Shown here: positions 1 to 42,754 of the stretch, piece by piece
Layout of the letters: each line of letters opens with the position of its first letter
Position numbering within the stretch: position 1 is the stretch's first letter
Assembly (NCBI GenBank): GCA_002104945.1
Contig: MCFH01000084.1
Location: 95,191 to 159,190 of the forward strand
Direction: 5' to 3'
Origin: Piromyces finnis finn
Taxonomy: Eukaryota; Fungi; Neocallimastigomycota
DNA length: 64,000 nt
Notes under the pieces: generated by a model
What the model was told of the DNA's origin: nothing
The model's database searches: none
The model's input: the letters and a program-made list of their open reading frames with translations, nothing else
Position numbers and translations under genes: made by a program

Positions 1-505
1 ATTATCCATGTCAGCGCAATCTGAAAGGGATTTAATATTTTTGTAAGCCAGATGTTTTTCATGTAATAAGTTTTTGATGTATTGAGGGCAATGGAATGCT
101 GGACCTTTTAAATCTGCAGTCACAATGGCTTTTATATCTTTACCTAAAGTTTTGGAAGTATCTAAAAATTTTGAAACCATATCGTCAGCCGATAGGCTAT
201 CGCAATTAGCTTCAAGCTTAGAAGCTAGAACAGCAAAACGATTACTAGTAAGAATGTCAGAACACTTTGTGTTACAGATATGACTTGACCACTTAAAGGT
301 CTTCTTAGGCTTTTTGAAACCATCAGAAGTCTTTTTTAAAAGACACAAGGATCAGAAACATCGGGAAAAACTTCGCAAACTGAAGATTTGTTTATGTGTT
401 CTGTCATAGCTTTGTTGTATATAATATGGTCAATGCATGAAGATTTAGATCCTTTTTCCCAAGTAAAATTATTACCAGTTAACTCAGCCATAGTCCAATC
501 AAGGA
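1..505 (-). mobile_element. Degenerate LINE family B fragment (endonuclease to linker region), running off the window edge
   Basis: Aligns by eye with 53721-54233 (attatccatgtcagcgcaatctgaaaggg ... aactcagccatagtccaatc), which lies in the decayed APE-RT element at about 52.9-55.2 kb. Confidence 0.85.
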
Positions 506-2270
506 TTTTTTTTTTTTTTTTTTTTTTTTAACGGCATCAAATATTTTTAAACTTTATTATTAATTAAATTAAAATTATAATACATGTTATATAAAAAATT
601 AAAAATTAAAATAAAAATAAAATATTGTTTAAATAAACACAAATGAATAAAAATTGGGTATAATGTATTCTAGTAATTTTAATTAAAGTAAGAAAGCCAC
701 TATTATACTAAAGTATAATAATTGTATTTGACTTCCAATGGGACACCGAGCCAAAGATCAAAATTTTATCATGGGACAAAATTATGATCTCCATTGGTTG
801 CGCTGGCCCTCCTGGCCTGTCTTACTGTTTCTTCAGCATTGACGCTCTTGGATGTTGCTTCAAACCTTTTGAACATTGACCATTGCTGGCCAATAGCAAA
901 AGGCATGATTTTGGTTAGAAGTTCCGCGGTTACCGTCAAGAATGGTGTTCCTTCGTTAGTACCAGATTGAATCTGACGCTTACAAAGTTCTTTCCATTCC
1001 CTTGAATTGTAATTAATATTGTTAAAACTTCTTCCCCCAAAAAAGAATTTAAATATTTTACTGCACAGACTAGAATAATCATACACACTAATATTCACCG
1101 GATTATTAGAACTATTACTATCATTAACTAAATTACTATCTAAATTAGAATTATTATCTTCACTATTGCTATCATTACTAGTATTATTATTTCTATAACT
1201 ACTATTGTTATTATTACTATTTCTATTACTACTATTGTTATTATTACTATTGTTACTATTACTATTGTTATTACTACTATTGTTACTATTACTATTAATG
1301 TTATTACTATCTCTACTGATATTATCAATTTCATTATTATTGATAGGACTATTGGAATTACGTTGACTGAAAAAATTTAATAGCTGGACTATAGAATCAT
1401 AATGTTTAATACGGATATCTCTAAATGTTGGACAATCTAATAACCAATGTTTAATACTTTGATCTCCACACTTGCAACATGGACAGTAGTTAGGACAAAC
1501 TGGATCAACAAATTTGGCAGCTTTGGCAACTCTAGCATCCAACTTGTATCCGCTTCTTGCTTTCAATAGCCAGTAGAAGCCATAGGCAAACTCTGGGTAC
1601 TCATAACATAATTTAATAAAATCTTTAGTTTCAATAAATTTATTATCATCATAATATTGCGCTTTGATTGAATTCCCTTTGAGATCTTTCCAATAAAAGC
1701 TTTTAACTGCTTTAACATCTCCATGCTTCTTTAGTTTTTTATCAAGTGTCCTACTTGATTTGCACCACGTGTATTTTCTAAATTTAGGAATGTAATTGAC
1801 AAGGTATGAGATAATACAATTTGAGTTTTTCCATTTGTTAAAACATCTAACCTGAGCTAATGCACATTTGGCTGACAATGGAGGAATATTCAAATCTTTT
1901 GAAATAGAGTATAAAGATATAAACGATACAGCTTTATGAACTCCAGCAACCCATCGTATTCCTTTGTTAACATGCTTCTGAGCAATCCTAGACCTAGCTT
2001 TGTTGGATCCAAGTAATGGTGCAAAGTATGAAACTCTGCTAATCACTTGTGAGTTAAGTACTAGCTTTTTGAAGGGAATAGGAATATTAGGATTTCTTAA
2101 GAATTTACTGACTGAGAAAAGTCCTTTCAAATCCTTGTTATTAAGAGCTTTAATTACTGGTTTAAGGGACAAATTCTTATCAAATGGAACACCAAGATAA
2201 GTATAACAATCAGTAGTTGGAATGGGTTGTCCTGCTAAGTAAAATGTTGGATCTCTCTTGTTCTGATTTT
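506..2270 (-). mobile_element. Family A LINE copy E1, 5'-truncated
   Basis: Poly(T) 506-529 followed by the family 3' end aacggcatcaaatatt; ORF 769-2172 is the C-terminal third of the 1510-aa protein; similarity stops at ttctgatttt near 2270. Confidence 0.95.
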
Positions 2271-2272
2271 TT

Positions 2273-2359
2273 TTTTCTACTCTCTCAGTACCATGAGCAT
2301 GAGTAGAGCCCCTTGAGAAACTTCATTAATTAAATAATTGAAATCACGTTCCCAAGGGG
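2273..2359 (-). repeat. Diverged 5'-terminal LINE monomer
   Basis: ttctactctctcagtaccatgagcatgagtagagccccttgagaaac...cacgttcccaagggg matches the family A 5' monomer with several substitutions. Confidence 0.85.
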
Positions 2360-2817
2360 TTTTTTTTTTTTTTTTTTTTTTTTTAACGGCATCAAATATT
2401 ATAAACTTTATTATTAATTTAATTAAAATTATAATACATGTAATAAAAAATTAAAAAATAAAAATAAAAATAAAAAAAATATGTTTAAATAAACACAAAT
2501 GAATAAAAATTGGGTATAATGTATTCTAGTAATTTTAATTAAAGTAAGAAAGCCACTATCATACTAAAGTATAATAATTGTATTTGACTTCCAATGGGAC
2601 ACCGAGCCAAAGATCAAAATTTTGTCATGGAACAAAATTATGATCTCCATTGGTTGCGCTGGCCCTCCTGGCCTGTCTTACTGTTTCTTCAGCATTGACG
2701 CTCTTGGATGTTGCTTCAAACCTTTTGAACATTGTCCATTGCTGGCCAATAGCAAAAGGCATGATTTTGGTTAGAAGTTCCGCGGTTACCGTCAAGAATG
2801 GTGTTCCTTCGTTAGTA
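2360..2817 (-). mobile_element. Family A LINE copy E2, heavily 5'-truncated
   Basis: Poly(T) 2360-2384, 3' UTR and the last ~65 codons; flanked by cccaagggg at 2351-2359 and 2818-2826 (about 9-bp TSD). Confidence 0.93.
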
Positions 2818-3094
2818 CCCAAGGGGGTAGATTTTTTTTTTTTTTTTTTTTTTAACGGCATCAAATATTTTAAACTTTATTATTAATTTAATTAAAATTA
2901 TAATACATGTAATATAAAAAATTAAAAATTAAAATAAAAATAAAAAAAGCATGTTTAAATAAACACAAATGAATAAAATTTGGGTATAATGTATTCTAGT
3001 AATTTTAATTAAAGTAAGAAAGCCACTATCATACTAAAGTATAATAATTGTATTTGACTTCCAATGGGACACCGAGCCAAAGATCAAAATTTTA

Positions 3095-6000
3095 TCATGG
3101 ATCAAAATTATGATCTCCATTGGTTGCGCTGGCCCTCCTGGCCTGTCTTACTGTTTCTTCAGCATTGACGCTCTTGGATGTTGCTTCAAACCTTTTGAAC
3201 ATTGACCATTGCTGGCCAATAGCAAAAGGCATGATTTTGGTTAGAAGTTCCGCGGTTACCGTCAAGAATGGTGTTCCTTCATTAGTACCAGATTGAATCT
3301 GACGCTTACAAAGTTCTTTCCATTCCCTTGAATTGTAATTAATATTGTTAAAACTTCTTCCCCCAAGAAGGAATTTAAATATTTCACTGCACACACTAGA
3401 ATAATCATACACATTAATATTCACCGGATTATTAGAACTATTACTATCATTAACTAAATTACTATCTAAATTAGAATTATTATCTTCACTATTGCTATCA
3501 TTACTAATATTATTATTTCTATTATTGTTATTATTACTATTGTTACTATTACTATTGTTACTATTACTATTGTTACTATTACTATTGTTACTATTACTAT
3601 TAATGTTATTACTATCTCTACTGATATTATCAATTTCATTATTATAGATAGGACTATTGGAATTACGTTGACTGAAAAAATTTAATAGCTGGACTATGGA
3701 ATCATAATGTTTAATACGGATATCTCTAAATGTTGGACAATCTAATAACCAATGTTTAATACTTTGATCTCCACACTTGCAACATGGACAGTAGTTAGGA
3801 CAAACTGGATCAACAAATTTAGCAGCTTTGGCAACTCTAGCATCCAACTTGTATCCGCTTCTTGCTTTCAAGAGCCAGTAGAAGCCATAGGCAAACTCTG
3901 GGTACTCATAACATAATTTAATAAAATCTTTAGTTTCAATAAATTTATTATCATCATAATATTGCGCTTTGATTGAATTCCCTTTGAGATCTTTCCAATA
4001 AAAGTTTTTAACTGCTTTAACATCTCCATGTTTCTTTAATTTTTTATCAAGTGTCCTACTTGATTTGCACCACGTGTATTTTCTAAATTTAGGAATGTAA
4101 TTGACAAGGTGTGAGATAATACAATTTGAGTTTTTCCATTTGTTAAAACATCTAACCTGAGCTAACGCACATTTGGCTGACAATGGAGGAATATTCAAAT
4201 CTTTTGAAATAGAGTATAAAGATATAAACGATACAGCTTTATGAACTCCAGCAACCCATCGTATTCCTTTGTTAACATGCTTCTGAGCAATCCTAGACCT
4301 AGCTTTGTTGGATCCAAGTAATGGTGCAAAGTATGAAACTCTGCTAATCACTTGTGAGTTAAGTACTAGTTTTTTGAAAGGAATAGGAATATTAGGATTT
4401 CTTAAGAATTTACTGACTGAGAAAAGCCCTTTCAAAACCTTGTTATTAAGAGCTTTAATTACTGGTTTAAGGGACAGATTCTTATCAAATGGAACACCAA
4501 GATAAGTATAGCAATCAGTAGTTGGAATGGGTTGTCCTGCTAAGTAAAATGTTGGATCTCTCTTGTTCTGATTTTCTATTGATTCAGGACGAATCACCAT
4601 CGTTGAACATTTCTGGATACCAAATTCCATTTCATTATACAAGGCCCATTCATTAACTCTTCTAAGCATCTTTTTTAAGCATCCTCTTGTTGGAGCACAA
4701 ATAACTATATCATCTGCAAAAAGTCCACCACAGCATCGAGTGTCACCTAAACTGACTCCTAGATCTTCGCACTCTCTAAATATATCATTAATAAAGAGAT
4801 TAAAGAGAATAGGAGAAAGAGGGCATCCTTGACGGACTCCTTTCTTCACATCAAAAGATTTCGAGAATTGTCCATCTAATTTGACATTAGCCTTAGATGT
4901 TAAATATAAATTTTTGATAAATTGTAGACTCTTACCTCGGATTCCTAAACAATCTAATTTATGGAGAATATTACCGATTGGGACTGAATCGTATGCTTTC
5001 CTGAGATCTAAAAAGGCCAAATATGTCTCTTTATTATCTAATTGACGTCTACGGCATATTTCTTGGATTGAAATGAAAAGACTGATACTTTCTTCCTTTT
5101 TTCGAAAACCAAATTGTTCAGGTCTAATGAAATTATTCTTTAAACCATATTCTGAGATTCTAGTGGTGACAATTTTGGAAATCAACTTAATACCATTATT
5201 GATAAGTGATATACCTCGATAGATATCACAATCTGTCAAATCTCCCTTCTTAGGAATAGAAACAATACTGGATTCATTCCATGAGTTGGGGAAATCTCCA
5301 TCCCAAATACGGTTGAATAATTTAAGAATAAAATTTAAACCATGAGCATCATTATCTGAAGTAGTATTACCAGAAGAATTATTATCTGTAGCATTATTAG
5401 AATCATTACTTGATGGAATTAATGCTTTGTAAAATTCAATTGGAATACCATCCGGACCTGATGCTTTATAATTTGGAGTAGTGAGGATAGCTGACTTGAC
5501 TTCATCAATACTAATATCTTGGTTGATATCCCACTCATCAAGCATAGGAAGTGAAAAACGTTTATTCGTTGGTTCTTCATACCAATGCTCCAAATCAAGA
5601 CTTACACCACTTGGATCTGATGCAAGATTTTCGAAATGATCATGCCACACATCTAGTTGTTCTTCCGTAGCAACAACTAATTCTCCGTTTTTATTTTTAA
5701 TTGGTTGAGCAATAAAGAAAGAATCTTTTCCAATTTTTGCAGTTTTCTTGATCCATTTCCAGGCCTTCTTAGGATTATGACTCTTCATATACTCACATCC
5801 TGTTTTAATCCAATGAAGATATTCTTGCTTCCTAAATTCATTACATCTTTTGTGGATGTAATCAATGAGTTTACGGTAGATTTTAATTCTTTTAATAAAT
5901 TCATCTATATCATAAATTCTTTCTTTTTTAAATCTCTTATACAACTTCATTTTGATTTTTTGGAGATTAAAAAATTGTTGTGAAATATGAAATGAAGACT

Positions 6001-7618
6001 TTATAACATTATTTGCTGAGGTAATACTGAGCTCGTCTGCAATTGAAAAAGCAGTTGAAGTAAACTCTTTGGAAAGTTCATCTGTAGAAACATTAGGATC
6101 GTTGAATTTTGCTGAAAGTATTTGGAATTTATTATGACTGATAATAGATTCCTTTTCCTCAATACATTTTAATCTATTCCATTTCTGAATTTTCTTAGGA
6201 ACATTAAAGTCATTAGAAAAATCTTCCATAGGAATAATTTTACCATTAATAAGAAGTGGCTTATGGTCTGATACAGGATAAAAATTATTTATAAATGATC
6301 CTGAGTGAATAAGATCTTTCATCTTCGAATTGATAAGAGCATGGTCAATGTCGGAAGATTGATCACCTCGAGTCCAAGAGATAGTAGACCCTCTAAGCGG
6401 AAGAATTTCCCAATCTCCTAATCCATTAGTTGATAACCAGTTGGATAATTTTACTTTAGACATATTAAAATCACCAACAAGAATCGATGGATGGGATGAA
6501 TGAGTTTGTAACCACAAGCGAGCTTCTAACTTTGCATGATCAACATAGATGTTGTGATGACTATGAGGCATATAAACATTACCAATCGAGCATTTGAATC
6601 TATTCCAGAGACTAAAAGTATAAATAGAAATAATATACTTTCCAGAGAAGTTTTCAAGTGAGGCTTGACACGAATTGTGAAAACCTAAATATAAACCTCT
6701 CATTCCCGGAACTGATTCGTCAGCTTTCTTGAAAAAGTGTCTATAGTTTCGCAAAGTAACACGACAAGGATAATCTGTATTCGATCCAGAACCATTACCA
6801 GTTTCTTGGAAACATAAAAATAATGGTTTGAAAATAGCTGTGAAATAGCTAATACTATCTCTCTTTTCGTGATTCCACCCATTGGTGTTCCAACTAAGAC
6901 AAAAAGAAAAGTTATCAGGCTTGTTGGATGAGGAAGAATCGTTGCTATTATTATTATTATTAAAGTCATCGTTATTAATGGATGATGCATCAGAGGAATA
7001 AGTAGAACTATTACTAGATGGCTGTGAAACTGAAGAACTATCAACTATTGAACTGTTATCAGAGTTGATAGAGCTATTAGAATTAATTGTTGAATGTTGA
7101 GATTGAAATTGTGTTTGCTGTAGATCTGGAATATTTTCATGATTGGAAACTTGTTGAAGATCTTGTTGAAGATCTAGTTGAAGATCGGATTGTTGATGAG
7201 ATTGTTGAACTGATTGTTGAAATGATTGTTGAATAGAATGTTGATGTTTATTAGAAACTAAAATTTTACGTTTGAGAGTGGAAAAAGTGTATTTGTGATT
7301 CCTTCTACTACGAGCTGAAAAGGAAATTGAGGTAACTGAAAGTTTCTTCTTTAACATGTGTAAGATTTTAATACAATCTTTCGATGAACCATGAACCTTG
7401 ACTAAGAAAAAGTGATCATTGAAAGTCTGAAAATATTTAACACTAATAACTGAATTAAATTTATCTTCTAGAATAACCTCGAGTTTTTCCCATAGCATAT
7501 TTACTGACCATGATCGAATACCACGGATAAAGAAGGAGCGAATATCATCTAAGGGGATACCATAAGACCGGGTACCACGTCTGATATAATTCTTGTCTTT
7601 AATATAAAGGACTGACAT
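3095..7618 (-). CDS. Non-LTR retrotransposon polyprotein (APE endonuclease, reverse transcriptase, CCHC zinc knuckle), 1507 aa
   Basis: APE motifs SWNTNG, FQET, GNVYMP, VGDFN, DIDH, SDHKP; RT motifs YRGISL, QFGFR, DLRKAYDSV, GVRQGCPLSP, FADD, YLG; C-terminal CPCC-x-KHWLLDC. Confidence 0.97.
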   Translation of the reverse strand: MSVLYIKDKNYIRRGTRSYGIPLDDIRSFFIRGIRSWSVNMLWEKLEVILEDKFNSVISVKYFQTFNDHFFLVKVHGSSKDCIKILHMLKKKLSVTSISFSARSRRNHKYTFSTLKRKILVSNKHQHSIQQSFQQSVQQSHQQSDLQLDLQQDLQQVSNHENIPDLQQTQFQSQHSTINSNSSINSDNSSIVDSSSVSQPSSNSSTYSSDASSINNDDFNNNNNSNDSSSSNKPDNFSFCLSWNTNGWNHEKRDSISYFTAIFKPLFLCFQETGNGSGSNTDYPCRVTLRNYRHFFKKADESVPGMRGLYLGFHNSCQASLENFSGKYIISIYTFSLWNRFKCSIGNVYMPHSHHNIYVDHAKLEARLWLQTHSSHPSILVGDFNMSKVKLSNWLSTNGLGDWEILPLRGSTISWTRGDQSSDIDHALINSKMKDLIHSGSFINNFYPVSDHKPLLINGKIIPMEDFSNDFNVPKKIQKWNRLKCIEEKESIISHNKFQILSAKFNDPNVSTDELSKEFTSTAFSIADELSITSANNVIKSSFHISQQFFNLQKIKMKLYKRFKKERIYDIDEFIKRIKIYRKLIDYIHKRCNEFRKQEYLHWIKTGCEYMKSHNPKKAWKWIKKTAKIGKDSFFIAQPIKNKNGELVVATEEQLDVWHDHFENLASDPSGVSLDLEHWYEEPTNKRFSLPMLDEWDINQDISIDEVKSAILTTPNYKASGPDGIPIEFYKALIPSSNDSNNATDNNSSGNTTSDNDAHGLNFILKLFNRIWDGDFPNSWNESSIVSIPKKGDLTDCDIYRGISLINNGIKLISKIVTTRISEYGLKNNFIRPEQFGFRKKEESISLFISIQEICRRRQLDNKETYLAFLDLRKAYDSVPIGNILHKLDCLGIRGKSLQFIKNLYLTSKANVKLDGQFSKSFDVKKGVRQGCPLSPILFNLFINDIFRECEDLGVSLGDTRCCGGLFADDIVICAPTRGCLKKMLRRVNEWALYNEMEFGIQKCSTMVIRPESIENQNKRDPTFYLAGQPIPTTDCYTYLGVPFDKNLSLKPVIKALNNKVLKGLFSVSKFLRNPNIPIPFKKLVLNSQVISRVSYFAPLLGSNKARSRIAQKHVNKGIRWVAGVHKAVSFISLYSISKDLNIPPLSAKCALAQVRCFNKWKNSNCIISHLVNYIPKFRKYTWCKSSRTLDKKLKKHGDVKAVKNFYWKDLKGNSIKAQYYDDNKFIETKDFIKLCYEYPEFAYGFYWLLKARSGYKLDARVAKAAKFVDPVCPNYCPCCKCGDQSIKHWLLDCPTFRDIRIKHYDSIVQLLNFFSQRNSNSPIYNNEIDNISRDSNNINSNSNNSNSNNSNSNNSNSNNSNNNNNRNNNISNDSNSEDNNSNLDSNLVNDSNSSNNPVNINVYDYSSVCSEIFKFLLGGRSFNNINYNSREWKELCKRQIQSGTNEGTPFLTVTAELLTKIMPFAIGQQWSMFKRFEATSKSVNAEETVRQARRASATNGDHNFDP

Positions 7619-8260
7619 GATAATAAATTCTAATTAAAAATATTGAATATAAAATAAATACTAATAAAAATTATAAATATAACGTATATGGAAAAAAAAT
7701 CTGTCTCTCTCTCTCTTCTTAAAAGTACTGGATAGTACAAAAATTGTTACGATGCTTTGTTTAAAGTTTCTTTTTTTGAATTCTAGTTGTAAATTTTCTT
7801 TAAAAATTCTAGTTTTGGTTTGTTGTTAGTAAATTCGATTCGCTTTTTGACACTAAACTTGTTTGACTTACTTTTCATTAAATATTTAAATTGGTAAAAA
7901 ATTTGAATCAAGAATGTCGACACCAGAAAGCTTGTGAATAGTATTTTTACATGATGTAGAGTGAATCAGTCTCTTACAAGAAACAATACAACAATAGCTA
8001 CATGAATATAAAAATACAATGCAAATGCTAAAGTTGACTACATTGGATTCTTACAAGAGAAGAGTAGTACTACATGAATACATGAATAAAAGAAAAAATA
8101 CAGCAACAAAATGTATTACTCTTCTAATTAAATACTATACAAACTTACCTGAATATCAAACATTCAACTTATTCATCAAATACTTAATTCGATGAATAAA
8201 ATGTTTTTTAATCGCTCAGTACCATGAGCTTAGTCCTAATAATTTTCCCTTAAAGACTAA

Positions 8261-8453
8261 CCAAGCATCCATTGCGCAATGTTTGGATTTAATTCTTTCT
8301 ACTCTCTCAGTACCATGAGCATGAGTAGACCCCCTTGATAAACTCCATTATTAAATAAATGAAGGCACGTTCCTAAGAGGGCACCAAGCATCCATCCATT
8401 GAGCAATACTTGGATTTAATTCTTTCTACTCTCTCAGTACCATGAGCATGAGT

Positions 8454-8456
<3 letters not shown>
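8261..8456 (-). repeat. 5' UTR tandem monomers of E3 (about 123-bp unit; second unit interrupted by E4)
   Basis: ccaagcatcc recurs at 8261 and 8384; the remainder of the second unit lies at 15098-15150. Confidence 0.9.
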
Positions 8457-8491
<35 letters not shown>

Positions 8492-9270
8492 GGCATCAAA
8501 TATTTTAAACTTTATTATTAATTTAATTAAAATTATAATACATGTAATAAAAAATTAAAAATAAATAAAAATAAAAAAAAATATGTTTAAATAAACACAA
8601 ATGAATAAAAATTGGGTATAATGTATTCTAGTAATTTTAATTAAAGTAAGAAAGCCACTATCATACTAAAGAATAATAATTGTATTTGACTTCCAATGGG
8701 ACACCGAGCCAAAGATCAAAATTTTGTCATGGAACAAAATTATGATCTCCATTGGTTGCGCTGGCCCTCCTGGCCTGTCTTACTGTTTCTTCAGCATTGA
8801 CGCTCTTGGATGTTGCTTCAAACCTTTTGAACATTGTCCATTGCTGGCCAATAGCAAAAGGCATGATTTTGGTTAGAAGTTCCGCGGTTACCGTCAAGAA
8901 TGGTGCTCCTTCATTAGTACCAGATTGAATCTGACGCTTACAAAGTTCTTTCCATTCCCTTGAATTGTAATTGATATTGTTAAAACTTCTTCCCCCAAGA
9001 AGGAATTTAAATATTTTACTGCACACACTAGAATAATCATACACACTAATATTCACCGGATTATTAGAACTATTACTATCATTAACTAAATTACTATCTA
9101 AATTAGAATTATTATCTTCACTATTGCTATCATTACTAATATTATTATTTCTATTACTACTATTGTTATTATTACTATTTCTATTATTACTATTACTACT
9201 ATTGTTATTATTACTATTGTTACTATTACTATTGTTATTATTACTATTGTTACTATTACTATTAATATTA

Positions 9271-9336
<66 letters not shown>

Positions 9337-9572
9337 GGCATCAAATATTTTAAACTTTATTATTAATTTAATTAAAATTATAATACATGTAATATAAAAA
9401 TTAAAATAAAATAAAAATAAAAAAAAATATGTTTAAATAAACACAAATGAATAAAAATTGGGTATAATGTATTCTAGTAATTTTAATTAAAGTAAGAAAG
9501 CCACTATCATACTAAAGTATAATAATTGTATTTGACTTCCAATGGGACACCGAGCCAAAGATCAAAATTTTA

Positions 9573-12500
9573 TCATGGGACAAAATTATGATCTCCATTG
9601 GTTGCGCTGGCCCTCCTGGCCTGTCTTACTGTTTCTTCAGCATTGACGCTCTTGGATGTTGCTTCAAACCTTTTGAACATTGACCATTGCTGGCCAATAG
9701 CAAAAGGCATGATTTTGGTTAGAAGTTCCGCGGTTACCGTCAAGAATGGTGTTCCTTCGTTAGTACCAGATTGAATCTGACGCTTACAAAGTTCTTTCCA
9801 TTCCCTTGAATTGTAATTAATATTGTTAAAACTTCTTCCCCCAAGAAGGAATTTAAATATTTTACTGCACACACTAGAATAATCATACACATTAATATTC
9901 ACCGGATTATTAGAACTATTACTATCATTAACTAAATTACTATCTAAATTAGAATTATTATCTTCACTATTGCTATCATTACTAATATTATTATTTCTAT
10001 TACTACTATTGTTATTATTACTATTGTTACTATTACTATTGTTATTATTACTATTGTTACTATTACTATTAATATTATTACTATCTCTACTGATATTATC
10101 AATTTCATTATTATTGATAGGACTATTGGAATTACGTTGACTGAAAAAATTTAATAGCTGGACTATGGAATCATAATGTTTAATACGGATATCTCTAAAT
10201 GTTGGACAATCTAATAACCAATGTTTAATACTTTGATCTCCACACTTGCAACATGGACAGTAGTTAGGACAAACTGGATCAACAAATTTGGCAGCTTTGG
10301 CAACTCTAGCATCCAACTTGTATCCGCTTCTTGCTTTCAATAGCCAGTAGAAGCCATAGGCAAACTCTGGGTACTCATAACATAATTTAATAAAATCTTT
10401 AGTATCAATAAACTTATTATCATCATAATATTGCGCTTTGATTGAATTCCCTTTGAGATCTTTCCAATAAAAGTTTTTAACTGCTTTAACATCTCCATGT
10501 TTCTTTAGTTTTTTATCAAGTGTCCTACTTGATTTGCACCACGTGTATTTTCTAAATTTAGGAATGTAATTGACAAGGTGTGAGATAATACAATTTGAGT
10601 TTTTCCATTTGTTAAAACATCTAACCTGAGCTAATGCACATTTGGCTGACAATGGAGGAATATTCAAATCTTTTGAAATAGAGTATAAAGATATAAACGA
10701 TACAGCTTTATGAACTCCGGCAACCCATCGTATTCCTTTGTTAACATGCTTCTGTGCAATCCTAGACCTGGCTTTGTTGGATCCAAGTAATGGTGCAAAG
10801 TATGAAACTCTGCTAATCACTTGTGAGTTAAGTACTAGCTTTTTGAAGGGAATAGGAATATTAGGATTTCTTAAGAATTTACTGACTGAGAAAAGTCCTT
10901 TCAAAACCTTGTTATTAAGAGCTTTAATAACTGGTTTAAGGGACAGATTCTTATCAAATGGAACACCAAGATAAGTATAACAATCAGTAGTTGGAATGGG
11001 TTGTCCTGCTAAGTAAAATGTTGGATCTCTCTTGTTCTGATTTTCTATTGATTCAGGACGAATCACCATCGTTGAACATTTCTGGATACCAAATTCCATT
11101 TCATTATACAAGGCCCATTCATTAACTCTTCTAAGCATCTTTTTTAAGCATCCTCTTGTTGGAGCACAAATAACTATATCATCTGCAAAAAGTCCACCAC
11201 AGCATCGAGTGTCACCTAAACTGACTCCGAGATCTTCACACTCTTTAAATATATCATTAATAAAGAGATTAAAGAGAATAGGAGAAAGAGGGCATCCTTG
11301 ACGGACTCCTTTCTTCACATCAAAAGATTTCGAGAATTGTCCATCTAATTTGACATTAGCCTTAGATGTTAAATATAAATTTTTGATGAATTGTAAACTC
11401 TTACCTCGGATTCCTAAACAATCTAATTTATGGAGAATATTACCGATTGGGACTGAATCGTATGCTTTCCTGAGATCTAAAAAGGCCAAATATGTCTCTT
11501 TATTATCTAATTGACGTCTACGGCATATTTCTTGGATTGAAATGAAAAGACTGATACTTTCTTCCTTTTTTCGAAAACCAAATTGTTCAGGTCTAATGAA
11601 ATTATTCTTTAGACCATATTCTGAGATTCTAGTGGTGACAATTTTGGAAATCAACTTAATACCATTATTGATAAGTGATATACCTCGATAGTTATCACAA
11701 TCTGTCAAATCTCCCTTCTTAGGAATAGAAACAATACTGGATTCATTCCATGAGTTGGGGAAGTCTCCATCCCAAATACGGTTGTATAATTTAAGAATAA
11801 AATTTAAACCATAAGAATCATTATCTGAAGTGGTATTACCGGAAGAATTATTATCTGTAGCATTATTAGAATCATTACTTGATGGAATTAATGCTTTGTA
11901 AAATTCAATTGGAATACCATCCGGACCTGATGCTTTATAATTCGGAGTAGAGAGGATAGCTGACTTGACTTCATCAATACTAATATCTTGGTTGATATCC
12001 CATTCATCAAGCATAGGGAGTGAAAAACGTTTATTCGTTGGTTCTTCATACCAATGCTCCAAATCAAGACTTACGCCACTTGGATCTGATGCAAGATTTT
12101 CGAAATGATCATGCCACACATCTAGTTGTTCTTCCGTAGCAACAACTAACTCTCCATTTTTATTTTTAATTGGTTGAGCAATAAAGAAGGAATCTTTTCC
12201 AATTTTTGCAGTTTTCTTGATCCATTTCCAGGCCTTCTTAGGATTATGACTCTTCATATACTCACATCCTGTTTTAATCCAATGAAGATATTCTTGTTTC
12301 CTAAATTCATTACATCTTTTGTGGATGTAATCAATGAGCTTACGGTAGATTTTAATTCTTTTAATAAATTCATCTATATCATAAATTCTTTCTTTTTTAA
12401 ATCTCTTATACAACTTCATTTTGATTTTTTGGAGATTAAAAATTTGTTGTGAAATATGAAATGAAGACTTTATAACATTATTTGCTGAGGTAATACTGAG

Positions 12501-14099
12501 CTCGTCTGCAATTGAAAAAGCAGTTGAAGTAAATTCTTTGGAAAGATCATCTGTAGAAACATTAGGATCGTTGAATTTTGCTGAAAGTATTTGGAATTTA
12601 TTATGACTGAGAATAGATTCCTTTTCCTCAATACATTTTAATCTATTCCATTTCAGAATTTTCTTAGGAACGTTAAAGTCATTAGAAAAATCTTCCATAG
12701 GAATAATTTTACCATTAATAAGAAGTGGCTTATGGTCTGATACAGGATAAAAATTATTTATAAATGATCCTGAGTGAATAAGATCTTTCATCTTCGAATT
12801 GATAAGAGCATGGTCAATGTCGGAAGATTGTTCACCTCGAGTCCAAGAGATAGTAGACCCTCTAAGCGGAAGAATTTCCCAATCTCCTAATCCATTAGTT
12901 GATAACCAGTTGGATAATTTTACTTTAGACATATTAAAATCACCAACAAGAATCGATGGATGGGATGAATGAGTTTGTAACCACAAGCGAACTTCTAACT
13001 TTGCATGATCAACATAGATGTTGTGATGACTATGAGGCATATAAACATTTCCAATCGAGCATTTGAATCTATTCCAGAGACTAAAAGTATAAATAGAAAT
13101 AATATACTTTCCAGAGAAGTTTTCAAGTGAGGCTTGACACGAATTGTGAAAACCTAAATATAAACCTCTCATTCCCGGAACTGATTCGTCAGCTTTCTTG
13201 AAAAAGTGTCTATAGTTTCGCAAAGTAACACGACAAGGATAATCTGTATTCGATCCAGAACCATTACCAGTTTCTTGGAAACATAAGAATAATGGTTTGA
13301 AAATAGCTGTGAAATAGCTAATACTATCTCTCTTTTCATGATTCCACCCATTGGTGTTCCAACTAAGACAAAAAGAAAAGTTATCAGGCTTGTTGGATGA
13401 GGAAGAATCGTTGCTATTATTATTATTATTAAAGTCATCGTTATTAATGGATGATGCATCAGAGGAATAAGTAGAACTATTACTAGATGGCTGTGAAACT
13501 GAAGAACTATCAACTATTGAACTGTTATCAGAGTTGATAGAACTATTAGAATTAATTGTTGAATGTTGAGATTGAAATTGTGTTTGCTGTAGATCTGGAA
13601 TATTTTCATGATGGGAAACTTGTTGAAGATCCTGTTGAAGATCTCGTTGAAGATCGGATTGTTGATGAGATTGTTGAACTGATTGTTGAACTGATTGTTG
13701 AAATGATTGTTGAATAGAATGTTGATGTTTATTAGAAACTAAAATTTTACGTTTGAGAGTGGAAAAAGTGTATTTGTGATTCCTTCTACTACGAGCTGAA
13801 AAGGAAATTGAGGTAACTGAAAGTTTCTTCTTTAACATGTGTAAGATTTTAATACAATCTTTTGATGAACCATGAACCTTGACTAAGAAAAAGTGATCAT
13901 TGAAAGTTTGAAAATATTTAACACTAATAACTGAATTAAATTTATCTTCTAGAATAACCTCGAGTTTTTCCCATAGCATATTTACTGACCATGATCGAAT
14001 ACCACGGATAAAGAAGGAGCGAATATCATCTAAGGGGATACCATAAGACCGGGTACCACGTCTGATATAATTCTTATCTTTAATATAAAGGACTGACAT
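9573..14099 (-). CDS. Non-LTR retrotransposon polyprotein (APE-RT-CCHC), 1508 aa
   Basis: Same APE, RT and CCHC motifs as 3095-7618; uninterrupted ORF. Confidence 0.97.
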   Translation of the reverse strand: MSVLYIKDKNYIRRGTRSYGIPLDDIRSFFIRGIRSWSVNMLWEKLEVILEDKFNSVISVKYFQTFNDHFFLVKVHGSSKDCIKILHMLKKKLSVTSISFSARSRRNHKYTFSTLKRKILVSNKHQHSIQQSFQQSVQQSVQQSHQQSDLQRDLQQDLQQVSHHENIPDLQQTQFQSQHSTINSNSSINSDNSSIVDSSSVSQPSSNSSTYSSDASSINNDDFNNNNNSNDSSSSNKPDNFSFCLSWNTNGWNHEKRDSISYFTAIFKPLFLCFQETGNGSGSNTDYPCRVTLRNYRHFFKKADESVPGMRGLYLGFHNSCQASLENFSGKYIISIYTFSLWNRFKCSIGNVYMPHSHHNIYVDHAKLEVRLWLQTHSSHPSILVGDFNMSKVKLSNWLSTNGLGDWEILPLRGSTISWTRGEQSSDIDHALINSKMKDLIHSGSFINNFYPVSDHKPLLINGKIIPMEDFSNDFNVPKKILKWNRLKCIEEKESILSHNKFQILSAKFNDPNVSTDDLSKEFTSTAFSIADELSITSANNVIKSSFHISQQIFNLQKIKMKLYKRFKKERIYDIDEFIKRIKIYRKLIDYIHKRCNEFRKQEYLHWIKTGCEYMKSHNPKKAWKWIKKTAKIGKDSFFIAQPIKNKNGELVVATEEQLDVWHDHFENLASDPSGVSLDLEHWYEEPTNKRFSLPMLDEWDINQDISIDEVKSAILSTPNYKASGPDGIPIEFYKALIPSSNDSNNATDNNSSGNTTSDNDSYGLNFILKLYNRIWDGDFPNSWNESSIVSIPKKGDLTDCDNYRGISLINNGIKLISKIVTTRISEYGLKNNFIRPEQFGFRKKEESISLFISIQEICRRRQLDNKETYLAFLDLRKAYDSVPIGNILHKLDCLGIRGKSLQFIKNLYLTSKANVKLDGQFSKSFDVKKGVRQGCPLSPILFNLFINDIFKECEDLGVSLGDTRCCGGLFADDIVICAPTRGCLKKMLRRVNEWALYNEMEFGIQKCSTMVIRPESIENQNKRDPTFYLAGQPIPTTDCYTYLGVPFDKNLSLKPVIKALNNKVLKGLFSVSKFLRNPNIPIPFKKLVLNSQVISRVSYFAPLLGSNKARSRIAQKHVNKGIRWVAGVHKAVSFISLYSISKDLNIPPLSAKCALAQVRCFNKWKNSNCIISHLVNYIPKFRKYTWCKSSRTLDKKLKKHGDVKAVKNFYWKDLKGNSIKAQYYDDNKFIDTKDFIKLCYEYPEFAYGFYWLLKARSGYKLDARVAKAAKFVDPVCPNYCPCCKCGDQSIKHWLLDCPTFRDIRIKHYDSIVQLLNFFSQRNSNSPINNNEIDNISRDSNNINSNSNNSNNNNSNSNNSNNNNSSNRNNNISNDSNSEDNNSNLDSNLVNDSNSSNNPVNINVYDYSSVCSKIFKFLLGGRSFNNINYNSREWKELCKRQIQSGTNEGTPFLTVTAELLTKIMPFAIGQQWSMFKRFEATSKSVNAEETVRQARRASATNGDHNFVP

Positions 14100-14745
14100 G
14101 ATAATAAATTCTAATTAAAAAATATTGAATATAAAATAAATACTAATAAAAATTACAAATATAACGTATATGGAAAAAAATCTGTCTCTCTCTCTCTTCT
14201 TAAAAGTACTGGATAGTACAAAAATTGTTACGATGCTTTGTTTAAAGTTTCTTATTTTTTGAATTCTAGTTGTAAATTTTCTTTAAAAATTCTAGTTTTG
14301 GTTTGTTGTTAGTAAATTCGATTCGCTTTTTGACACTAAACTTGTTTGACTTTACTTTTCATTAAATATTTAAATTGGTAAAAAATTTGAATCAAGAATG
14401 TCGACACCAGAAAGCTTGTGAATAGTATTTTTACATGATGTAGAGTGAATCAGTCTCTTACAAGAAACAATACAACAATAGCTACATGAATATAAAAGTA
14501 CAATGCAAATGCTAAAGTTGACTACATTGGATTCTTACAAGAGAAGAGTAGTACTACATGAATACATGAATAAAAGAAAAAATACAGCAACAAAATGTAT
14601 TACTCTTCTAATTAAATACTATACAAACTTACCTGAAAAATCAAACATTCACTTATTCATCAAATACTTAAATTTGATGAATAAAATGTTTATTAATCGC
14701 TCAGTACCATGAGCTTAGTCCTAATAATTTTCCCTTGAAGACTAA

Positions 14746-15059
14746 CCAAGCATCCATTGCGCAATGCTTGGATTTAATTCTTTCTACTCTCTCAGTACCA
14801 TGAGCATGAGTAGACCCCCTTGAGAAATTACATTTATTAAATAAATGAAGGCACATTCCTAAGAGGGCACCAAGCATCCATTGCGCAATACTTGGATTTA
14901 ATTCTTTCTACTCTCTCAGTACCATGAGCATGAGTAGACCCCCTTGAGAAACTACATTTATTAAATAAATGAAGGCACGTTCCCAAGAGGGATGAGCATG
15001 AGTAGACCCCCTTGAGAAACTACATTTATTAAATAAATGAAGGCACGTTCCCAAGAGGG
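14746..15059 (-). repeat. 5' UTR monomers of E5 (2 x 124 bp plus a 68-nt partial unit)
   Basis: ccaagcatcc at 14746 and 14870; the terminal aagaggg ends at 14867, 14991 and 15059. Confidence 0.92.
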
Positions 15060-15784
15060 AATATTATTACTATCTCTACTGATATAGCATGAGTAGACCC
15101 CCTTGAGAAACTACATTTATTAAATAAATGAAGGCACGTTCCCAAGAGGGACAAGGGGGTAGAAACAATGAAAGCAGAGTTCTATTTCAAAGAAAAGGAA
15201 CATTCCAAATTTATTAAAAATTAATAAGACATTTCCAAATATTATTGCTTAAACAAAAAACTCTTAAAACACAAATCGATCATATCTAAAAACCTAATTA
15301 TTAAGCCTTTTAAAAAAATGCATTTCTCACATACAGCCAAATTATTAAATACTCAATTTTAAATCCACTTAAAAAAAATTATAATTAAACAAAAGCATTT
15401 AATTTACAACATAACCAAAAAATACCTATATATATTTTAATTTTTATCTTTATTAAAATTATATTAATAGAATTATTTCTATTTTTTCTATTTCAATACA
15501 TTATTTTTAAGAATTTCAAATAATTTATTATTATTATATAAAATTCATTATTATTTTATATGTATTATTACTTAATTAAGAATATAATTTCAATAATTTT
15601 TAATTTATATGAAATATATATTTTGTATTTACACTTTCGGATTATTAATTATTATAATCCATAATTTTAAACTAAATTAATTTAGGATTGCTTACTAATC
15701 AACAAATTTAAACTAATTTAAGTTAATTTAAGCATTTTTTTAGTTGCTTTATGATCATTTCATTCATACATTTATGCGATAAAT

Positions 15785-17224
15785 TTATGCGTCATCAGCC
15801 TTGTGGTTACGCTTTTCAATTTCCTTGTTGATTTCATCAATCTTTTCATCAGTTAATGAATAGAAGGAAATGATAATCATCATAACAATCATTAAAATAG
15901 CTGGAATAATAGCAACATTCCAACGAATACATTCCTTAGTAGAATCGGCTTGGTGCTTCATCTTATAGAACCAACCAACGGAAGTATTGTGGATATTCAT
16001 ACAACAGAAAGCAGTAACGAAGTAGAAAGCAATAACACGTAATGGTCCGTTACGAATAAATTCAATCCATAAATCACTAACCTTAACATTTTCAGTTTCC
16101 TTGTCTTCCATAACAACACGTTCCTTAGACTTAACGAAACAGAATACAAGAAGTAAGAAACCAACAACAGCGTAAAGAATCATAGCAGAGAACCAAGCCT
16201 TTGAATTAGTAGTGTAACCACTACCACCATCATTAGCTTCAAGGTCTGCATCGTAGTGGAAGAAGTAAAGGAGCCATCCTGGAATAGCACCACCAAGAGC
16301 AAAACCGGCCTTGAAGAAAATACCAGTAAGAGCATTGATAATACCGGCAATACGACGACCAGTAGTATATTCAGCATAAGAAATAACTTCTGGAACAATA
16401 GCCCACATGTAACCAGTAACAGTGGTAAGACCAGTTGACTTGATAAAGTTGGCAACTAACATCCAGACACTCTTATCAGAGTCGGCAAGACCCATTCTAC
16501 TGAAGATGTATAATAAGGCATAACCGATAATACCAATAACACCAAAGGAATAGAATAATCCCTTCTTACCAGTGAACTTCTTAATGTATGGAACAAATGG
16601 CATGATGACAAAACCTGGAAGAGCACCAATAAAGTTGAATAAAACAACATTCCAATCAATAGCTTGTTTGGAGAAGAGACCAGCAACAATTGGGAAACCA
16701 GTCCAGACAAATAAACCACCAATGTTAGCCATAGTCATACGAATAGAGGTAAGAACTGTAATTTCTTGAGTATCTCTAGTCATTGAAGCATTTAAGGCAC
16801 CGTATGGAACGTTAGTAAGAGTGTAACACATTTGTAATAAAGTGTAGGTAATAGCGGCGTAAGTAATACTACCCTTGAAAATATCCCAGTAACAAAGAAT
16901 AGCAAGAACACATAATGGGAAACCAGCTGTAACTAAATAGGAACGGTACTTACCCCAACGTGGGTTGTGCTTATCAACAAAGGCACCAACAAATGGATCC
17001 CAAATAACATCAAGTAAACGAACAACAAGCATAAGTGCACCTGATACAGCTGTTGCCTTCTTTGAATCATTACCAATAATATATACATTAGTGTAGTAGA
17101 ATGCAATGAAACCACTAACATTTTGGTAAATAAAGTTTTGTGCCATATCACCAGCACCATAACCAATTCTGGTTAACCATGAAAGCTTGAAAAAGCCATT
17201 GGCTTCGTCCTTTACTGTACTCAT
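15785..17224 (-). CDS. GPH-family (MelB/XynT-like) MFS sugar or oligosaccharide:cation symporter, copy 1, intronless, permuted helix order
   Basis: 479 aa; motifs GYGAGDMAQN, DVIWDPFVGAFVD, WGKYRSY, TNVPYGAL, TSIRM, GKK, EVISYAEYTTGRRIAG, KERV, YSLT; 12 hydrophobic segments. Confidence 0.93.
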   Translation of the reverse strand: MSTVKDEANGFFKLSWLTRIGYGAGDMAQNFIYQNVSGFIAFYYTNVYIIGNDSKKATAVSGALMLVVRLLDVIWDPFVGAFVDKHNPRWGKYRSYLVTAGFPLCVLAILCYWDIFKGSITYAAITYTLLQMCYTLTNVPYGALNASMTRDTQEITVLTSIRMTMANIGGLFVWTGFPIVAGLFSKQAIDWNVVLFNFIGALPGFVIMPFVPYIKKFTGKKGLFYSFGVIGIIGYALLYIFSRMGLADSDKSVWMLVANFIKSTGLTTVTGYMWAIVPEVISYAEYTTGRRIAGIINALTGIFFKAGFALGGAIPGWLLYFFHYDADLEANDGGSGYTTNSKAWFSAMILYAVVGFLLLVFCFVKSKERVVMEDKETENVKVSDLWIEFIRNGPLRVIAFYFVTAFCCMNIHNTSVGWFYKMKHQADSTKECIRWNVAIIPAILMIVMMIIISFYSLTDEKIDEINKEIEKRNHKADDA

Positions 17225-19803
17225 TTTTTTTCTTAAATTAACTTAAATGTAAAACTATTAGTTTAAATTTTAATTTTTTACTTAAATTATTATCTTAAAA
17301 TATTAAGTAATTTTATTACTTAATTTATTTTATTGAATATTAAAAAAATAGTCTTTTCGTTTTACTTTTATACTTCTTTTTTATTAAAAAACTTTTGTAT
17401 ATATTACATTATTAATATAATATATATTTATTATTAAAAAAATAAATTAATTATTGTGTAATATATTAAAATTTACACAAATATTAACATAATATTTTAT
17501 AATAAATTATAAAATTATATATGTTTAAAAATATATTTTTTAAAGTTAAATATACCTTATTATGTTAAATAGCACAATAATGAAAAATGATGGTTTATAA
17601 ATAATAAATATAATTTATAATATCTATAAAAAAATATACATTTACACATATCATTTTTATAATTGCAATAATAAAAATAATTTTATAAATATTTATTCAT
17701 TTATTCTAATCTTTGATTAATAATTAAGTTAAAACTTACAAATCTGCTCCTATATTCAACTAATATTCAATCACATAGTAAATAGAGTTTATTTTTGGAA
17801 ACTTTAATTTATTATTTATTAAATTTTTAATTTATAATATTAAGCACTTTTTATTAAAATGAGTAAGGTCTATTCATTATTTTTATTAAATTGAATAATA
17901 GAAATGTAGAAAAATAAGTTATTTAAACGATATATTTATCTTTTAAATATATATACAATATATATTGTATAATTAATTAAAATAAATATTGAAAAATTAA
18001 TCAAATATTGAATATATATGAATATATAAATCTTATTGAATGTAAATAAATTATTTATCTAAAAATAGAAAATAATTACACAATACAAAATTAAATTGAT
18101 GTAATATATATTATAACATTGATGAAATTTAATGTAAATAATTATTCTCATATATTACTTATAATAAATCATATATACATATAAAAAAAAAATTAACATC
18201 ATTATATTATTAACAGATTAGATCTTAATATTATTCTATTATTTTAAATGCTAACATGCATATATTTTTAAAATTTAATTCGATTGATAGTTATTATATC
18301 TATAGTATTACATAAGAATAAGAAAATACATTTATTTTAATATTTTATGAAAAATCAAAGAAATTTAGTTTTTATTAATTTAAAACCTAAGAAGTGAATT
18401 ACTTAATAAGAATCATTAATATAAAAATATTTATAATAAGCATTGTAACATTGTAACTCCACAATTATATTTATGGTAATATAAGTTTACTAATGAAGTA
18501 AATTTTTTTTTACTTTCTTAAAATAATTAATAACAATATTAATTCAAAAAAAGTTTATTTTTATAAATTTTTAATTTAAAATTTAATTAGTGATTGTAAA
18601 CTCTATTATATATTAAATCAGATCAAATCAAATGTCATTATTGGATGAACAAAATAATAAGGGAATTTAATCAAAATGTAAACTTTATTTTATATTAAGA
18701 AATTGTTTTAATTCATCCTTATTTTATGTTAAATTAAACTTTGCTAATCAAGATAAATAAAGATATATGTATAACGGTAAAGTAATGATTTAATAATAAA
18801 TAAACTTTTTACTTTAATTTTAAAATGATATATTTAATAATTACGTAACTATGGTTAATGGATGAATTATTATTATTATAATCATAATGTAAAAAAAAAG
18901 TAAACTGTAATTAAAGAAAAATTAAGATTTTCTTTGATTTATAAAAAATAAATGTAATAAAGAAGGTAACTATAAGGAAAATGTTTATATGAATCTTTTT
19001 TTATGAAATAATGTAATATATTTTATTAATTAATAATTAGTAATGTACAACTAATATTTATCAAAATTCCTATCCTCAAATATATTAATACATTGGCGTT
19101 TATTTTGTTCATTCTCCAGTCAAATAATAAAATATAAAAGAAAAAAGAAATAAAAATTTTATTAATTTAATAATGAATCATTTTAGGAAATATTTCATAA
19201 AATTAAAAATTGTGTTAATAAATACAATTTATTATATTTTAAAAATTATTGGAGAGGTTTTTTTAAGAAATTTAGAAAATTATGTTAATTTTTTTATTAA
19301 ATAGAATATTCAAAAGAATTTTGTTAATGTTTATTTAAAAATTTTGTTAATTAATAAATATTGCATTTATAATAAAAGCATTTGAATAAACACTTTATTT
19401 CCTTTTCATGGAGATATATTAAAATAATCATACTTAAAGCAAATGTTTAACAATAGTATTATCATTTTAAAAAAGATTAAAATTATGACTTTAATCGATA
19501 CTTGTTAAAGTTAAAATTTTATTAAAAAGTAGTAACCTCCTAGATATAGTTAGATAAATTAAATTTAAAAATTTTTTATGGAAAAATTAAAAAGAAATTC
19601 AATTAAAGAAACTTGATTTTAATTATTTTTTTAATTTTGTTATATTCTTTGTTATTATAAATATTAAGAAGTAAAAAAAAAAAATAAAGTTCTTTTCACT
19701 TTTTTTTTTTTTTTTTTTTTTTAATTAAAAAAATAATATTTATATTGCCATTTTGGAGGAATGAGGAATTTATTGTTATTATATAATAAAGAAAATAAAA
19801 ATT

Positions 19804-23019: not shown

Positions 23020-23160
23020 ACACTAAATTATTTGATTTTACTTTTCATTAAATATTTAAATTGGTAAAAAATTTGAATCAAGAATGTCGACACCAGAAAG
23101 CTTGTGAATAGTATTTTTACATGATGTAGAGTGATTCAGTCTCTTACAAGAAATAATACA
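23020..23160 (-). mobile_element. Solo fragment of the family A 5' UTR
   Basis: tttacttttcattaaatatttaaattggtaaaaaatttgaatcaagaatgtcgacaccagaaagcttgtg...ctcttacaagaaa matches about 14335-14470. Confidence 0.9.
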
Positions 23161-23718
23161 TTAAAGATAATAGATATAATAATTTCAAAAGATATTTTAT
23201 TTATAATTTCATTTTTAAATACTGGAAACATTCAAAATAATATCATTTATAGAAAAGCAACTACAACAGCATTTACTCATTATACTACTAACCAGATTTT
23301 TAAAAAATAAGACTTATATCATAATTAATACAAAACACATTATTATATATTTTTAATAATTACTATATTTTATTATTTTATTATATATAATATTACCATT
23401 ATAAAATATATATTTTTAATTAATATTATTATTTTATTTTTATTATATTTATTTAAAATATCTTAATAATAGTCTATAATATATAATATATTATATTTTA
23501 TCTTTTTAATAATATTTAACATTACATTACTTTTTTTTTTTTTGTTATTTACATTTTTCATTATTCTTATTAATTTAAACTAATTTAAATGATTTAATTT
23601 TTTATTATTATTTTCTATCATTATATTCATCATTATTAAACTAATTTAAATTTAAGTTAATTTAAGCATTTTTTTAGTTGCTTTATGATCATTTCATTCA
23701 TACATTTATGCGATAAAT

Positions 23719-25158
23719 TTATGCGTCATCAGCCTTGTGGTTACGCTTTTCAATTTCCTTGTTGATTTCATCAATCTTTTCATCAGTTAATGAATAGAAG
23801 GAAATGATAATCATCATAACAATCATTAAAATAGCTGGAATAATAGCAACATTCCAACGAATACATTCCTTAGTAGAATCGGCTTGGTGCTTCATCTTGT
23901 AGAACCAACCAACGGAAGTATTGTGGATATTCATACAACAGAAAGCAGTAACGAAGTAGAAAGCAATAACACGTAATGGTCCGTTACGAATAAATTCAAT
24001 CCATAAATCACTAACCTTAACATTTTCAGTTTCCTTGTCTTCCATAACAACACGTTCCTTAGACTTAACGAAACAGAATACAAGAAGTAAGAAACCAACA
24101 ACAGCGTAAAGAATCATAGCAGAGAACCAAGCCTTTGAATCAGTAGTATAACCACTACCACCATCCTTAGCTTCAAGGTCTGCATCGTAGTGGAAGAAGT
24201 AAAGGAGCCATCCTGGAATAGCACCACCAAGAGCAAAACCGGCCTTGAAGAAAATACCAGTAAGAGCATTGATAATACCGGCAATACGACGACCAGTAGT
24301 ATATTCAGCATAAGAAATAACTTCTGGAACAATAGCCCACATGTAACCAGTAACAGTGGTAAGACCAGTTGACTTGATAAAGTTGGCAACTAACATCCAG
24401 ACGCTCTTATCAGAGTCGGCAAGACCCATTCTACTGAAGATGTATAATAAGGCATAACCGATAATACCAATGACACCAAAGGAATAGAATAATCCCTTCT
24501 TACCAGTGAACTTCTTAATGTATGGAACAAATGGCATGATGACAAAACCTGGAAGAGCACCAATAAAGTTGAATAAAACAACATTCCAATCAATAGCTTG
24601 TTTGGAGAAGAGACCAGCAACAATTGGGAAACCAGTCCAGACAAATAAACCACCAATGTTAGCCATAGTCATACGAATAGAGGTAAGAACTGTAATTTCT
24701 TGAGTATCTCTAGTCATTGAAGCATTTAAGGCACCGTATGGAACGTTAGTAAGAGTGTAACACATTTGTAATAAAGTGTAGGTAATAGCGGCGTAAGTAA
24801 TACTACCCTTGAAAATATCCCAGTAACAAAGAATAGCAAGAACACATAATGGGAAACCAGCTGTTACTAAATAGGAACGGTACTTACCCCAACGTGGGTT
24901 GTGCTTATCAACAAAGGCACCAACAAATGGATCCCAAATAACATCAAGTAAACGAACAATAAGCATAAGTGCACCTGATACAGCTGTTGCCTTCTTTGAA
25001 TCATTACCAATAATATATACATTAGTGTAGTAGAATGCAATGAAACCACTAACATTTTGGTAAATAAAGTTTTGTGCCATATCACCAGCACCATAACCAA
25101 TTCTGGTTAACCATGAAAGCTTGAAAAAGCCATTGGCTTCGTCCTTTACTGTACTCAT
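23719..25158 (-). CDS. GPH-family MFS symporter, copy 2
   Basis: 479 aa; differs from copy 1 at 3 residues (V67I, N331K, N340D). Confidence 0.93.
   Translation of the reverse strand: MSTVKDEANGFFKLSWLTRIGYGAGDMAQNFIYQNVSGFIAFYYTNVYIIGNDSKKATAVSGALMLIVRLLDVIWDPFVGAFVDKHNPRWGKYRSYLVTAGFPLCVLAILCYWDIFKGSITYAAITYTLLQMCYTLTNVPYGALNASMTRDTQEITVLTSIRMTMANIGGLFVWTGFPIVAGLFSKQAIDWNVVLFNFIGALPGFVIMPFVPYIKKFTGKKGLFYSFGVIGIIGYALLYIFSRMGLADSDKSVWMLVANFIKSTGLTTVTGYMWAIVPEVISYAEYTTGRRIAGIINALTGIFFKAGFALGGAIPGWLLYFFHYDADLEAKDGGSGYTTDSKAWFSAMILYAVVGFLLLVFCFVKSKERVVMEDKETENVKVSDLWIEFIRNGPLRVIAFYFVTAFCCMNIHNTSVGWFYKMKHQADSTKECIRWNVAIIPAILMIVMMIIISFYSLTDEKIDEINKEIEKRNHKADDA

Positions 25159-42711: not shown

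Positions 42712-42754
<43 letters not shown>

Follow-up and report, generated by a model that had tools for sequence, protein, structure and literature searches.

Can a LINE use its own 5' unit as the preferred landing site for new copies? The question is raised by two junctions of a 5.7-kb LINE family, denoted family A, in the window (the whole 64,000-nucleotide stretch of Piromyces finnis DNA that was analysed, to which all positions refer). At 8456/8457 and at 59802/59803 the 16-mer catgagcatgagtaga runs directly into a poly(T) tract, T32 from 8457 and T35 from 59803, and both tracts lead on into the LINE 3' end aacggcatcaaatatt. On the sense strand the junction reads caaggggg/tctactc, which is 37085/37086 in the intact copy E6 and corresponds to the bond between positions 53 and 54 of a 124-nt 5' monomer. 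The original prediction, that the poly(T) tracts of E4 and E9 begin at an identical nucleotide of the monomer, was thus correct to the base. It had also claimed that this bond is the boundary of two inverted repeats, that the poly(T) of E3 follows gtaga and that the tail of E8 follows aaagac in a related 5' UTR. All three statements held: RNA folding of the monomer yielded three hairpins (z = -4.7), and the bond falls precisely where hairpin 1 (positions 1-53, with a 12-bp stem) gives way to hairpin 2 (positions 54-85); the E3 tail was found at 2832; and the E8 tail at 56435 adjoins a 47-nt block that is 89% like the 5' UTR of family A. An Rfam scan of the monomers returned no ribozyme and no other family.

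Monomers differ according to their place in the element. Where 37033-37279, 14745-14991 and 59486-59802 were compared, terminal monomers begin with ccctcttGgg and form a perfect hairpin-1 stem; internal monomers begin with ccctcttAgg, which introduces an A-C mismatch into this stem. The 'aataatggagtttatc' variant in internal monomers is common to E3 and E8.

The window is AT-rich (74% A+T), and about 44% of it consists of family A. In the reference copy E6, two 124-nt 5' monomers precede a single ORF of 1516 aa, and the copy ends in a poly(A) tail. In this single polyprotein the APE domain (Exo_endo_phos, residues 245-456, E 6e-6) lies upstream of the reverse transcriptase (RVT_1, residues 792-1047, E 1e-35), and human L1 ORF2p is the nearest solved relative of the ORF (E 1e-32). 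The ORFs of E3 (1507 aa), E5 (1508 aa) and E6 are intact; those of E8 and E9 are broken. Poly(A) tails of 15-59 nt were observed, three copies (Ex, E4* and Eold) are 5'-truncated, Ey/E0 is internally deleted, and the TSDs vary in length (7-9, 11, 12, 12, 12 and 26 bp). By its domain order, poly(A) tails, 5' truncation and variable TSDs, family A is an L1-like, APE-type LINE.

The best database relatives of the family A ORF, from gut metagenomes and anaerobic gut fungi (Orpinomyces, Neocallimastix), show only 63% identity; the retrieved relatives L001 and L002 are single copies of 45-60% identity that carry no junction information. No database record was found for the ORFs of E6, E5, E3 and E9, two metagenome scans gave no match to the 3' end of family A, and a literature search for LINEs of this fungus returned no paper. 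Contig sets from one DNA-type run and three RNA-type runs were compared with E6 (5,951 letters). The DNA-type contigs give very deep coverage of the element, and each of the three RNA-type runs also contains family A contigs, a result that fits expression of the family.

Besides the copies described below, an isolated 142-nt family A fragment (96% identical to reference positions 551-692 in the 5' UTR region) was found at 23020-23160, far from every other element part. Ordinary genes of the window are exemplified by a transporter gene at 15785-17224, which is included in a 1.6-kb duplication (15715-17317 and 23649-25250, 98.6% identity). Near-perfect tandem repeats are located at 26270-26605 and 27552-27893 (two units of 166 bp at 99%, and 3.5 units of 98 bp at 98%).

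Table 1. Positions of LINE copies, flanking duplications and target sites in the window; a caret marks the nick.
Feature	Positions	Strand	Description
Family B-like LINE fragment	1-505	-	End of APE coding region; 93% identical to 53721-54233
Ey + E0	506-2359	-	One internally deleted copy; 5' terminus at 2359
Ex	2360-2819	-	460-nt 5'-truncated copy, inserted exactly at E0 5' terminus; TSD of 7-9 bp (2351/2353-2359 and 2818/2820-2826)
E3 TSD copy A	2820-2831	.	caagggggtaga; 12 nt identical to copy B
E3 host copy	2832-8456	-	From poly(A) to monomer position 54; ORF of 1507 aa
E4* insertion TSD copy A	8445-8456	.	agcatgagtaga; monomer positions 54-65, nick after 8456
E4* main part	8457-9274	-	T32 tail and LINE 3' part
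E5 insertion TSD copy A	9264-9274	.	Last 11 nt of E4* main part
E5	9275-14991	-	Full-length copy; T59 tail, two monomers, 5' end at monomer position 1, ORF of 1508 aa
P1 leader of E5	14992-15059	-	68 nt; monomer positions 1-68, ahead of E5 position 1
E5 insertion TSD copy B	15060-15070	.	aatattattac; exact repeat of 9264-9274
E4* 5'-most 15 nt	15071-15085	-	Collinear with E5 and E9; microsatellite edge
E4* insertion TSD copy B	15086-15097	.	agcatgagtaga; repeats 8445-8456
E3 terminal monomer, positions 53 to 1	15098-15150	-	Forms a complete monomer with 8382-8456
E3 TSD copy B	15152-15163	.	Repeats 2820-2831 after one extra base
Eold 5' part	36978-37032	+	Old 5'-truncated copy; own 12-bp TSD (36966-36977 and 43113-43124)
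E6	37033-42750	+	Full-length reference copy; 1516-aa ORF (APE and RT), inserted in Eold with a 26-bp TSD (37007-37032 and 42751-42776)
Eold 3' part with poly(A)	42751-43112	+	Split from 5' part by E6
47-nt 5' UTR block of related LINE family	56388-56434	-	Target of E7/E8, nick after aaagac
E7/E8	56435-59802	-	One internally deleted copy; 2.6 monomers, ends at monomer position 54, ORF broken
E9	59803-64000	-	T35 tail, at least 4.2 kb, runs off window end; ORF broken; sister of E5
Eold target site			tatatg^g; AT-rich non-LINE DNA; TSD-proven
E6 target site			gcaaa^agg; 3' UTR of Eold; TSD-proven
Ex target site			caagggg^g; at 5' terminus of E0; TSD-proven
E3 target site			ggtaga^aac; 5 nt outside E0 5' terminus, non-monomer DNA; TSD-proven
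E4* target site			gagtaga^ccccc; terminal monomer of E3; TSD-proven
E5 target site			attac^t; microsatellite edge of E4*; TSD-proven

The first of the two junctions is part of a three-layer stack of copies. Its outermost layer is E3, a full-length host flanked by a 12-bp TSD. E4*, with a total length of 833 nt and a 5' truncation point at an internal microsatellite's edge, sits in the terminal monomer of E3 at bond 53/54 and is flanked by a 12-bp TSD. E5 and its 68-nt leader P1 sit 15 nt inside the 5' end of E4* and are flanked by an 11-bp TSD. We accept the three-layer nesting because the segment 15060-15085 is made up of a TSD copy followed by collinear LINE sequence, which matches both E5 and E9 exactly. 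With the inserts taken out in order, the two parts of E4* join into a sequence collinear with E5, and the E3 monomer becomes complete and matches E6 across bond 53/54. The insertion of E4* in E3 is a proven nested insertion.

Three other expectations for this region were discarded. The segment 15060-15085 is not filler, its first 11 nt being the TSD copy of E5 and the next 15 nt the continuation of E4*. The joint between E4 and E5 is not a template switch, E5 being a TSD-flanked insertion in E4*. The 5' half of the E3 monomer was expected to be of the 'atggag' type, as in the second monomer; the restored monomer is of the consensus type.

For the second junction we infer that E9 inserted into E8 at bond 53/54, with its TSD lying beyond the window end. 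A single origin of both junctions would require one nested dimer whose junction was then copied by read-through retrotransposition, gene conversion or segmental duplication. Such a history would agree with the 11 subfamily sites common to E3 and E8 against E5 and E6, with the variant 5202C seen in E4 and E9 alone, and with the similar lengths of the junction poly(A) (32 and 35). However, E4*, whose TSD and host remainder are in place, is 833 nt long and cannot yield E9 with its length of at least 4.2 kb. The host 3' flanks also differ (caagggggtaga for E3, aaagac in the UTR of another family for E7/E8), as do the number (1.6 in E3, 2.6 in E8) and type of the monomers, and the host monomers next to the bond are three SNPs and a 4-nt indel apart within 155 nt. 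A block duplication predicts equal divergence of the two pairs; the host pair E3/E8 differs by 1.31%, about twice the 0.67% of the invader pair E5/E9 (10 and 9 private changes), which argues against copying. In addition, a copy inserted at bond 53/54 with a 15-bp TSD would have upstream of it precisely the stretch of host monomer that makes up the P1 leader, and this footprint, as opposed to the 12 bp in place around E4*, points to an event distinct from the E4* insertion. Judged from these comparisons, the E9/E8 junction cannot have been copied from that between E4* and E3. Segmental duplication of E3/E4 and E8/E9, a possibility raised along with the original prediction, is ruled out by the lengths, flanks, monomer number and SNPs. 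The subfamily common to E3 and E8 and the private variant of E4 and E9 leave room for some shared history, and we consider a single origin of the junction unlikely. Another way to produce the junction, without endonuclease targeting, is a stall of the reverse transcriptase at the base of the very stable hairpin 1 followed by a jump to the poly(A) of another LINE RNA, or the insertion of a copy truncated at position 54 into a poly(A) tail; the constant junction would then reflect the RNA. The bond does coincide exactly with the 3' base of a GC-closed stem of 12 bp, and internal deletions with jump-like joints are found in Ey/E0 and E7/E8. Nevertheless, we regard this explanation as very unlikely: host positions 1-53 and the 12-nt duplication are present exactly upstream of E4*, the layers of the stack follow a strict last-in-first-out order and carry exact duplications, as expected of nested insertion but beyond what a stall and jump can produce, the apparent switch from E4 to E5 is the TSD-flanked insertion mentioned above, and no other family A nick lies in a poly(T) run.

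Bond 53/54 has therefore been used in at least two independent events, one with a 12-bp TSD and one with a 15-bp TSD as judged by its footprint. With about 10 monomers in 64 kb, a second event would hit the identical bond in one of them with a probability of approximately 1e-4, and the background of GTAGA outside family A is 6e-4 per position and strand; chance thus does not explain the repeated use of the bond. E9, the sister of E5, may be the source of the leader-type event. If the TSD of E9 proves to be the 15-nt tctactcatgctcat, the E9-in-E8 arrangement is likely the parent of E5 and its leader. P1 looks like a 5' transduction from the host monomer in which the source copy of E5 was nested.

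The remaining copies add to the catalogue of landing sites. E6 sits 29 nt inside the 5' end of Eold. The poly(A) of Ey adjoins the 5' end of the family B-like fragment at 1-505, and a TAGAAA microhomology links the 3' 1.77 kb of Ey to part of a divergent 5' monomer (positions 1 to about 89). Ey/E0 is thus probably a chimeric copy; no TSDs were resolved for it or for its junction with the family B-like fragment. An expanded A run is seen at the Ey joint (2255-2285 compared with 40975-40990), where the monomer piece is 87-90% identical to family A. A second, related LINE family occupies 51000-56434 and 1-505 on the minus strand; its APE part lies at 53721-54233, and its 5' UTR has a 47-nt block in common with family A. 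In E7/E8 the deletion joins the 3' 800 nt to reference position 2624 and upstream. This joint and the truncation point of E4* are about 10 nt apart (9230-9274, 15071-15085 and 57225-57240), both at the upstream edge of an ORF-internal (TAATAG)n-like microsatellite, and this edge may be a hot spot at which reverse transcription stops or jumps.

The six TSD-proven sites of family A have six different sequences. Only E3, E4* and E9 have GTAGA^ in common (three of nine nick sites), and no other clear motif was found. Hence, family A is not strictly site-specific. A partial, local preference of the endonuclease for GTAGA^ is likely, given the reuse of the bond and the E3 nick in non-monomer DNA against the background frequency of this motif. 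What the sites have in common is their position. Measured from the host 5' end, the nicks lie at 0 (Ex), -5 (E3), 53 (E4*), 15 (E5) and 29 nt (E6), so that all five TSD-resolved nested events fall between -5 and +53 nt whatever the sequence. Three hosts have a known length (5.7 kb, 833 nt and about 390 nt); if nicks were placed uniformly along them, the probability of this outcome would be 0.0099 x 0.067 x 0.14, or about 9e-5. Of nine insertions in the window, eight lie against or within LINE sequence, and in all eight the orientation is that of the adjoining LINE, including Ey beside the APE fragment of the related family (chance about 0.004). Each new copy is located in the tip of its immediate predecessor. 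This evidence on targeting comes from one 64-kb window with 8-9 events. The feature common to the nested events is nearness to a resident 5' end in the same orientation, and not the monomer sequence.

Two further explanations stand at opposite extremes with respect to targeting. Strict sequence specificity, with the monomer of the element as its dedicated target, was the strong version of the original prediction. Reuse of the bond at least twice and the presence of GTAGA^ at the E3 site as well speak for it, but TSD-proven insertions were also located at the edge of a microsatellite, within a 3' UTR, at a 5' terminus and in AT-rich DNA outside LINEs, and we find this version highly improbable. 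The claim that the element targets its own 5' monomer accordingly stands in part: the insertions are TSD-flanked and of the endonuclease type, and the bond was reused, whereas a preference for the monomer sequence did not bear out, with E5, E6, Ex, E3 and Eold located at other TSD-proven sites. Conversely, there might be no preference at all, insertions being random and only copies in dead repeats surviving selection in a compact genome. With family A accounting for so much of the window, nesting is expected often; yet survival bias leaves the identical bond, the nearness to the tip and the uniform orientation unexplained, and this explanation is hardly credible to us.

We therefore favour as probable the reading that family A is an L1-like LINE that uses ordinary target-primed reverse transcription at non-random targets near resident 5' ends, with a favoured bond in the terminal monomer. 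According to this proposal, the APE endonuclease and reverse transcriptase would insert a new copy by target-primed reverse transcription, in the same orientation as the resident copy and about -5 to +55 nt from its 5' end. The rule would hold for full-length monomer ends and truncated ends alike. Where the tip is a terminal monomer, nicking of the antisense strand would favour GAGTAGA^CCCCC, between hairpins 1 and 2. The leader of E5 would stem from transcription that started in the host monomer. The original prediction had suggested that a nested copy gains an upstream 5' end, and the 68-nt leader fits transcription from the host 5' end.

As a tentative possibility, the LINE recognises position and not sequence, the landmark being the 5' boundary of any resident copy, so that each copy becomes the next landing pad. 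Insertion would then take place within about 55 nt of the boundary and in the same orientation, into full-length and truncated hosts; copies nested in a terminal monomer could use the start site of the host, as the E5 leader suggests. Our best guess at how the tip is recognised, conceivable though doubtful, is that LINE RNA pairs with the resident copy's antisense strand as far as homology extends. Such pairing would explain why orientation is uniform, why only related families serve as hosts and why the boundary matters.

Other LINEs provide points of comparison. R1, TRAS/SART and Tx1 are strictly site-specific APE LINEs, with nearly all copies in one target sequence. Family A resembles them in having an APE-type endonuclease and in the reuse of an exact bond, but most of its TSD-proven sites differ in sequence. 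Dictyostelium TRE5-A is position-specific; its landmark is the tRNA gene, which is recognised through the Pol III machinery. In TRE5-A the target depends on the distance to this landmark and not on sequence; the same appears to apply to family A, where the landmark is the 5' end of a resident LINE copy instead of a tRNA gene. Self-targeting, which the original prediction had considered unusual, is less so than it seemed, since tandem-oriented insertion into their own copies has been described for Cnl1 and Zepp (PMC9942834, PMC8226300). Cnl1 of Cryptococcus neoformans and C. deneoformans has a preference for G/C-rich targets and produces short, variable TSDs of 1-12 bp (10.1101/2021.08.11.455996). 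Like family A, Cnl1 is L1-like and self-nesting, and it can also land elsewhere. Its arrays are subtelomeric, and the papers on Cnl1 that were consulted describe neither the reuse of one 5' monomer bond nor a rule of landing at the host 5' tip. Family A is also longer (5.7 kb versus 3.5 kb), carries 124-nt hairpin monomers and comes from another phylum of fungi. Green algae have the L1 LINEs Zepp and ZeppL; Zepp is confined to one cluster per chromosome, at putative centromeres. At the scale of the window, family A shows two self-nesting traits of Cnl1 and Zepp, namely landing in related copies and tandem orientation.

Taken together, same-orientation self-nesting was already known from Cnl1 and Zepp, and an early-diverging fungal phylum is now added. 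The three-deep stack, with a TSD for every layer, offers unusually clean evidence at the nucleotide level. Stacking on its own copies spares the genes of a compact host genome and produces long arrays with a single orientation. The proposed 5'-tip landing rule, combined with a favoured bond, could also explain the growth of arrays in Cnl1-like and Zepp-like elements.
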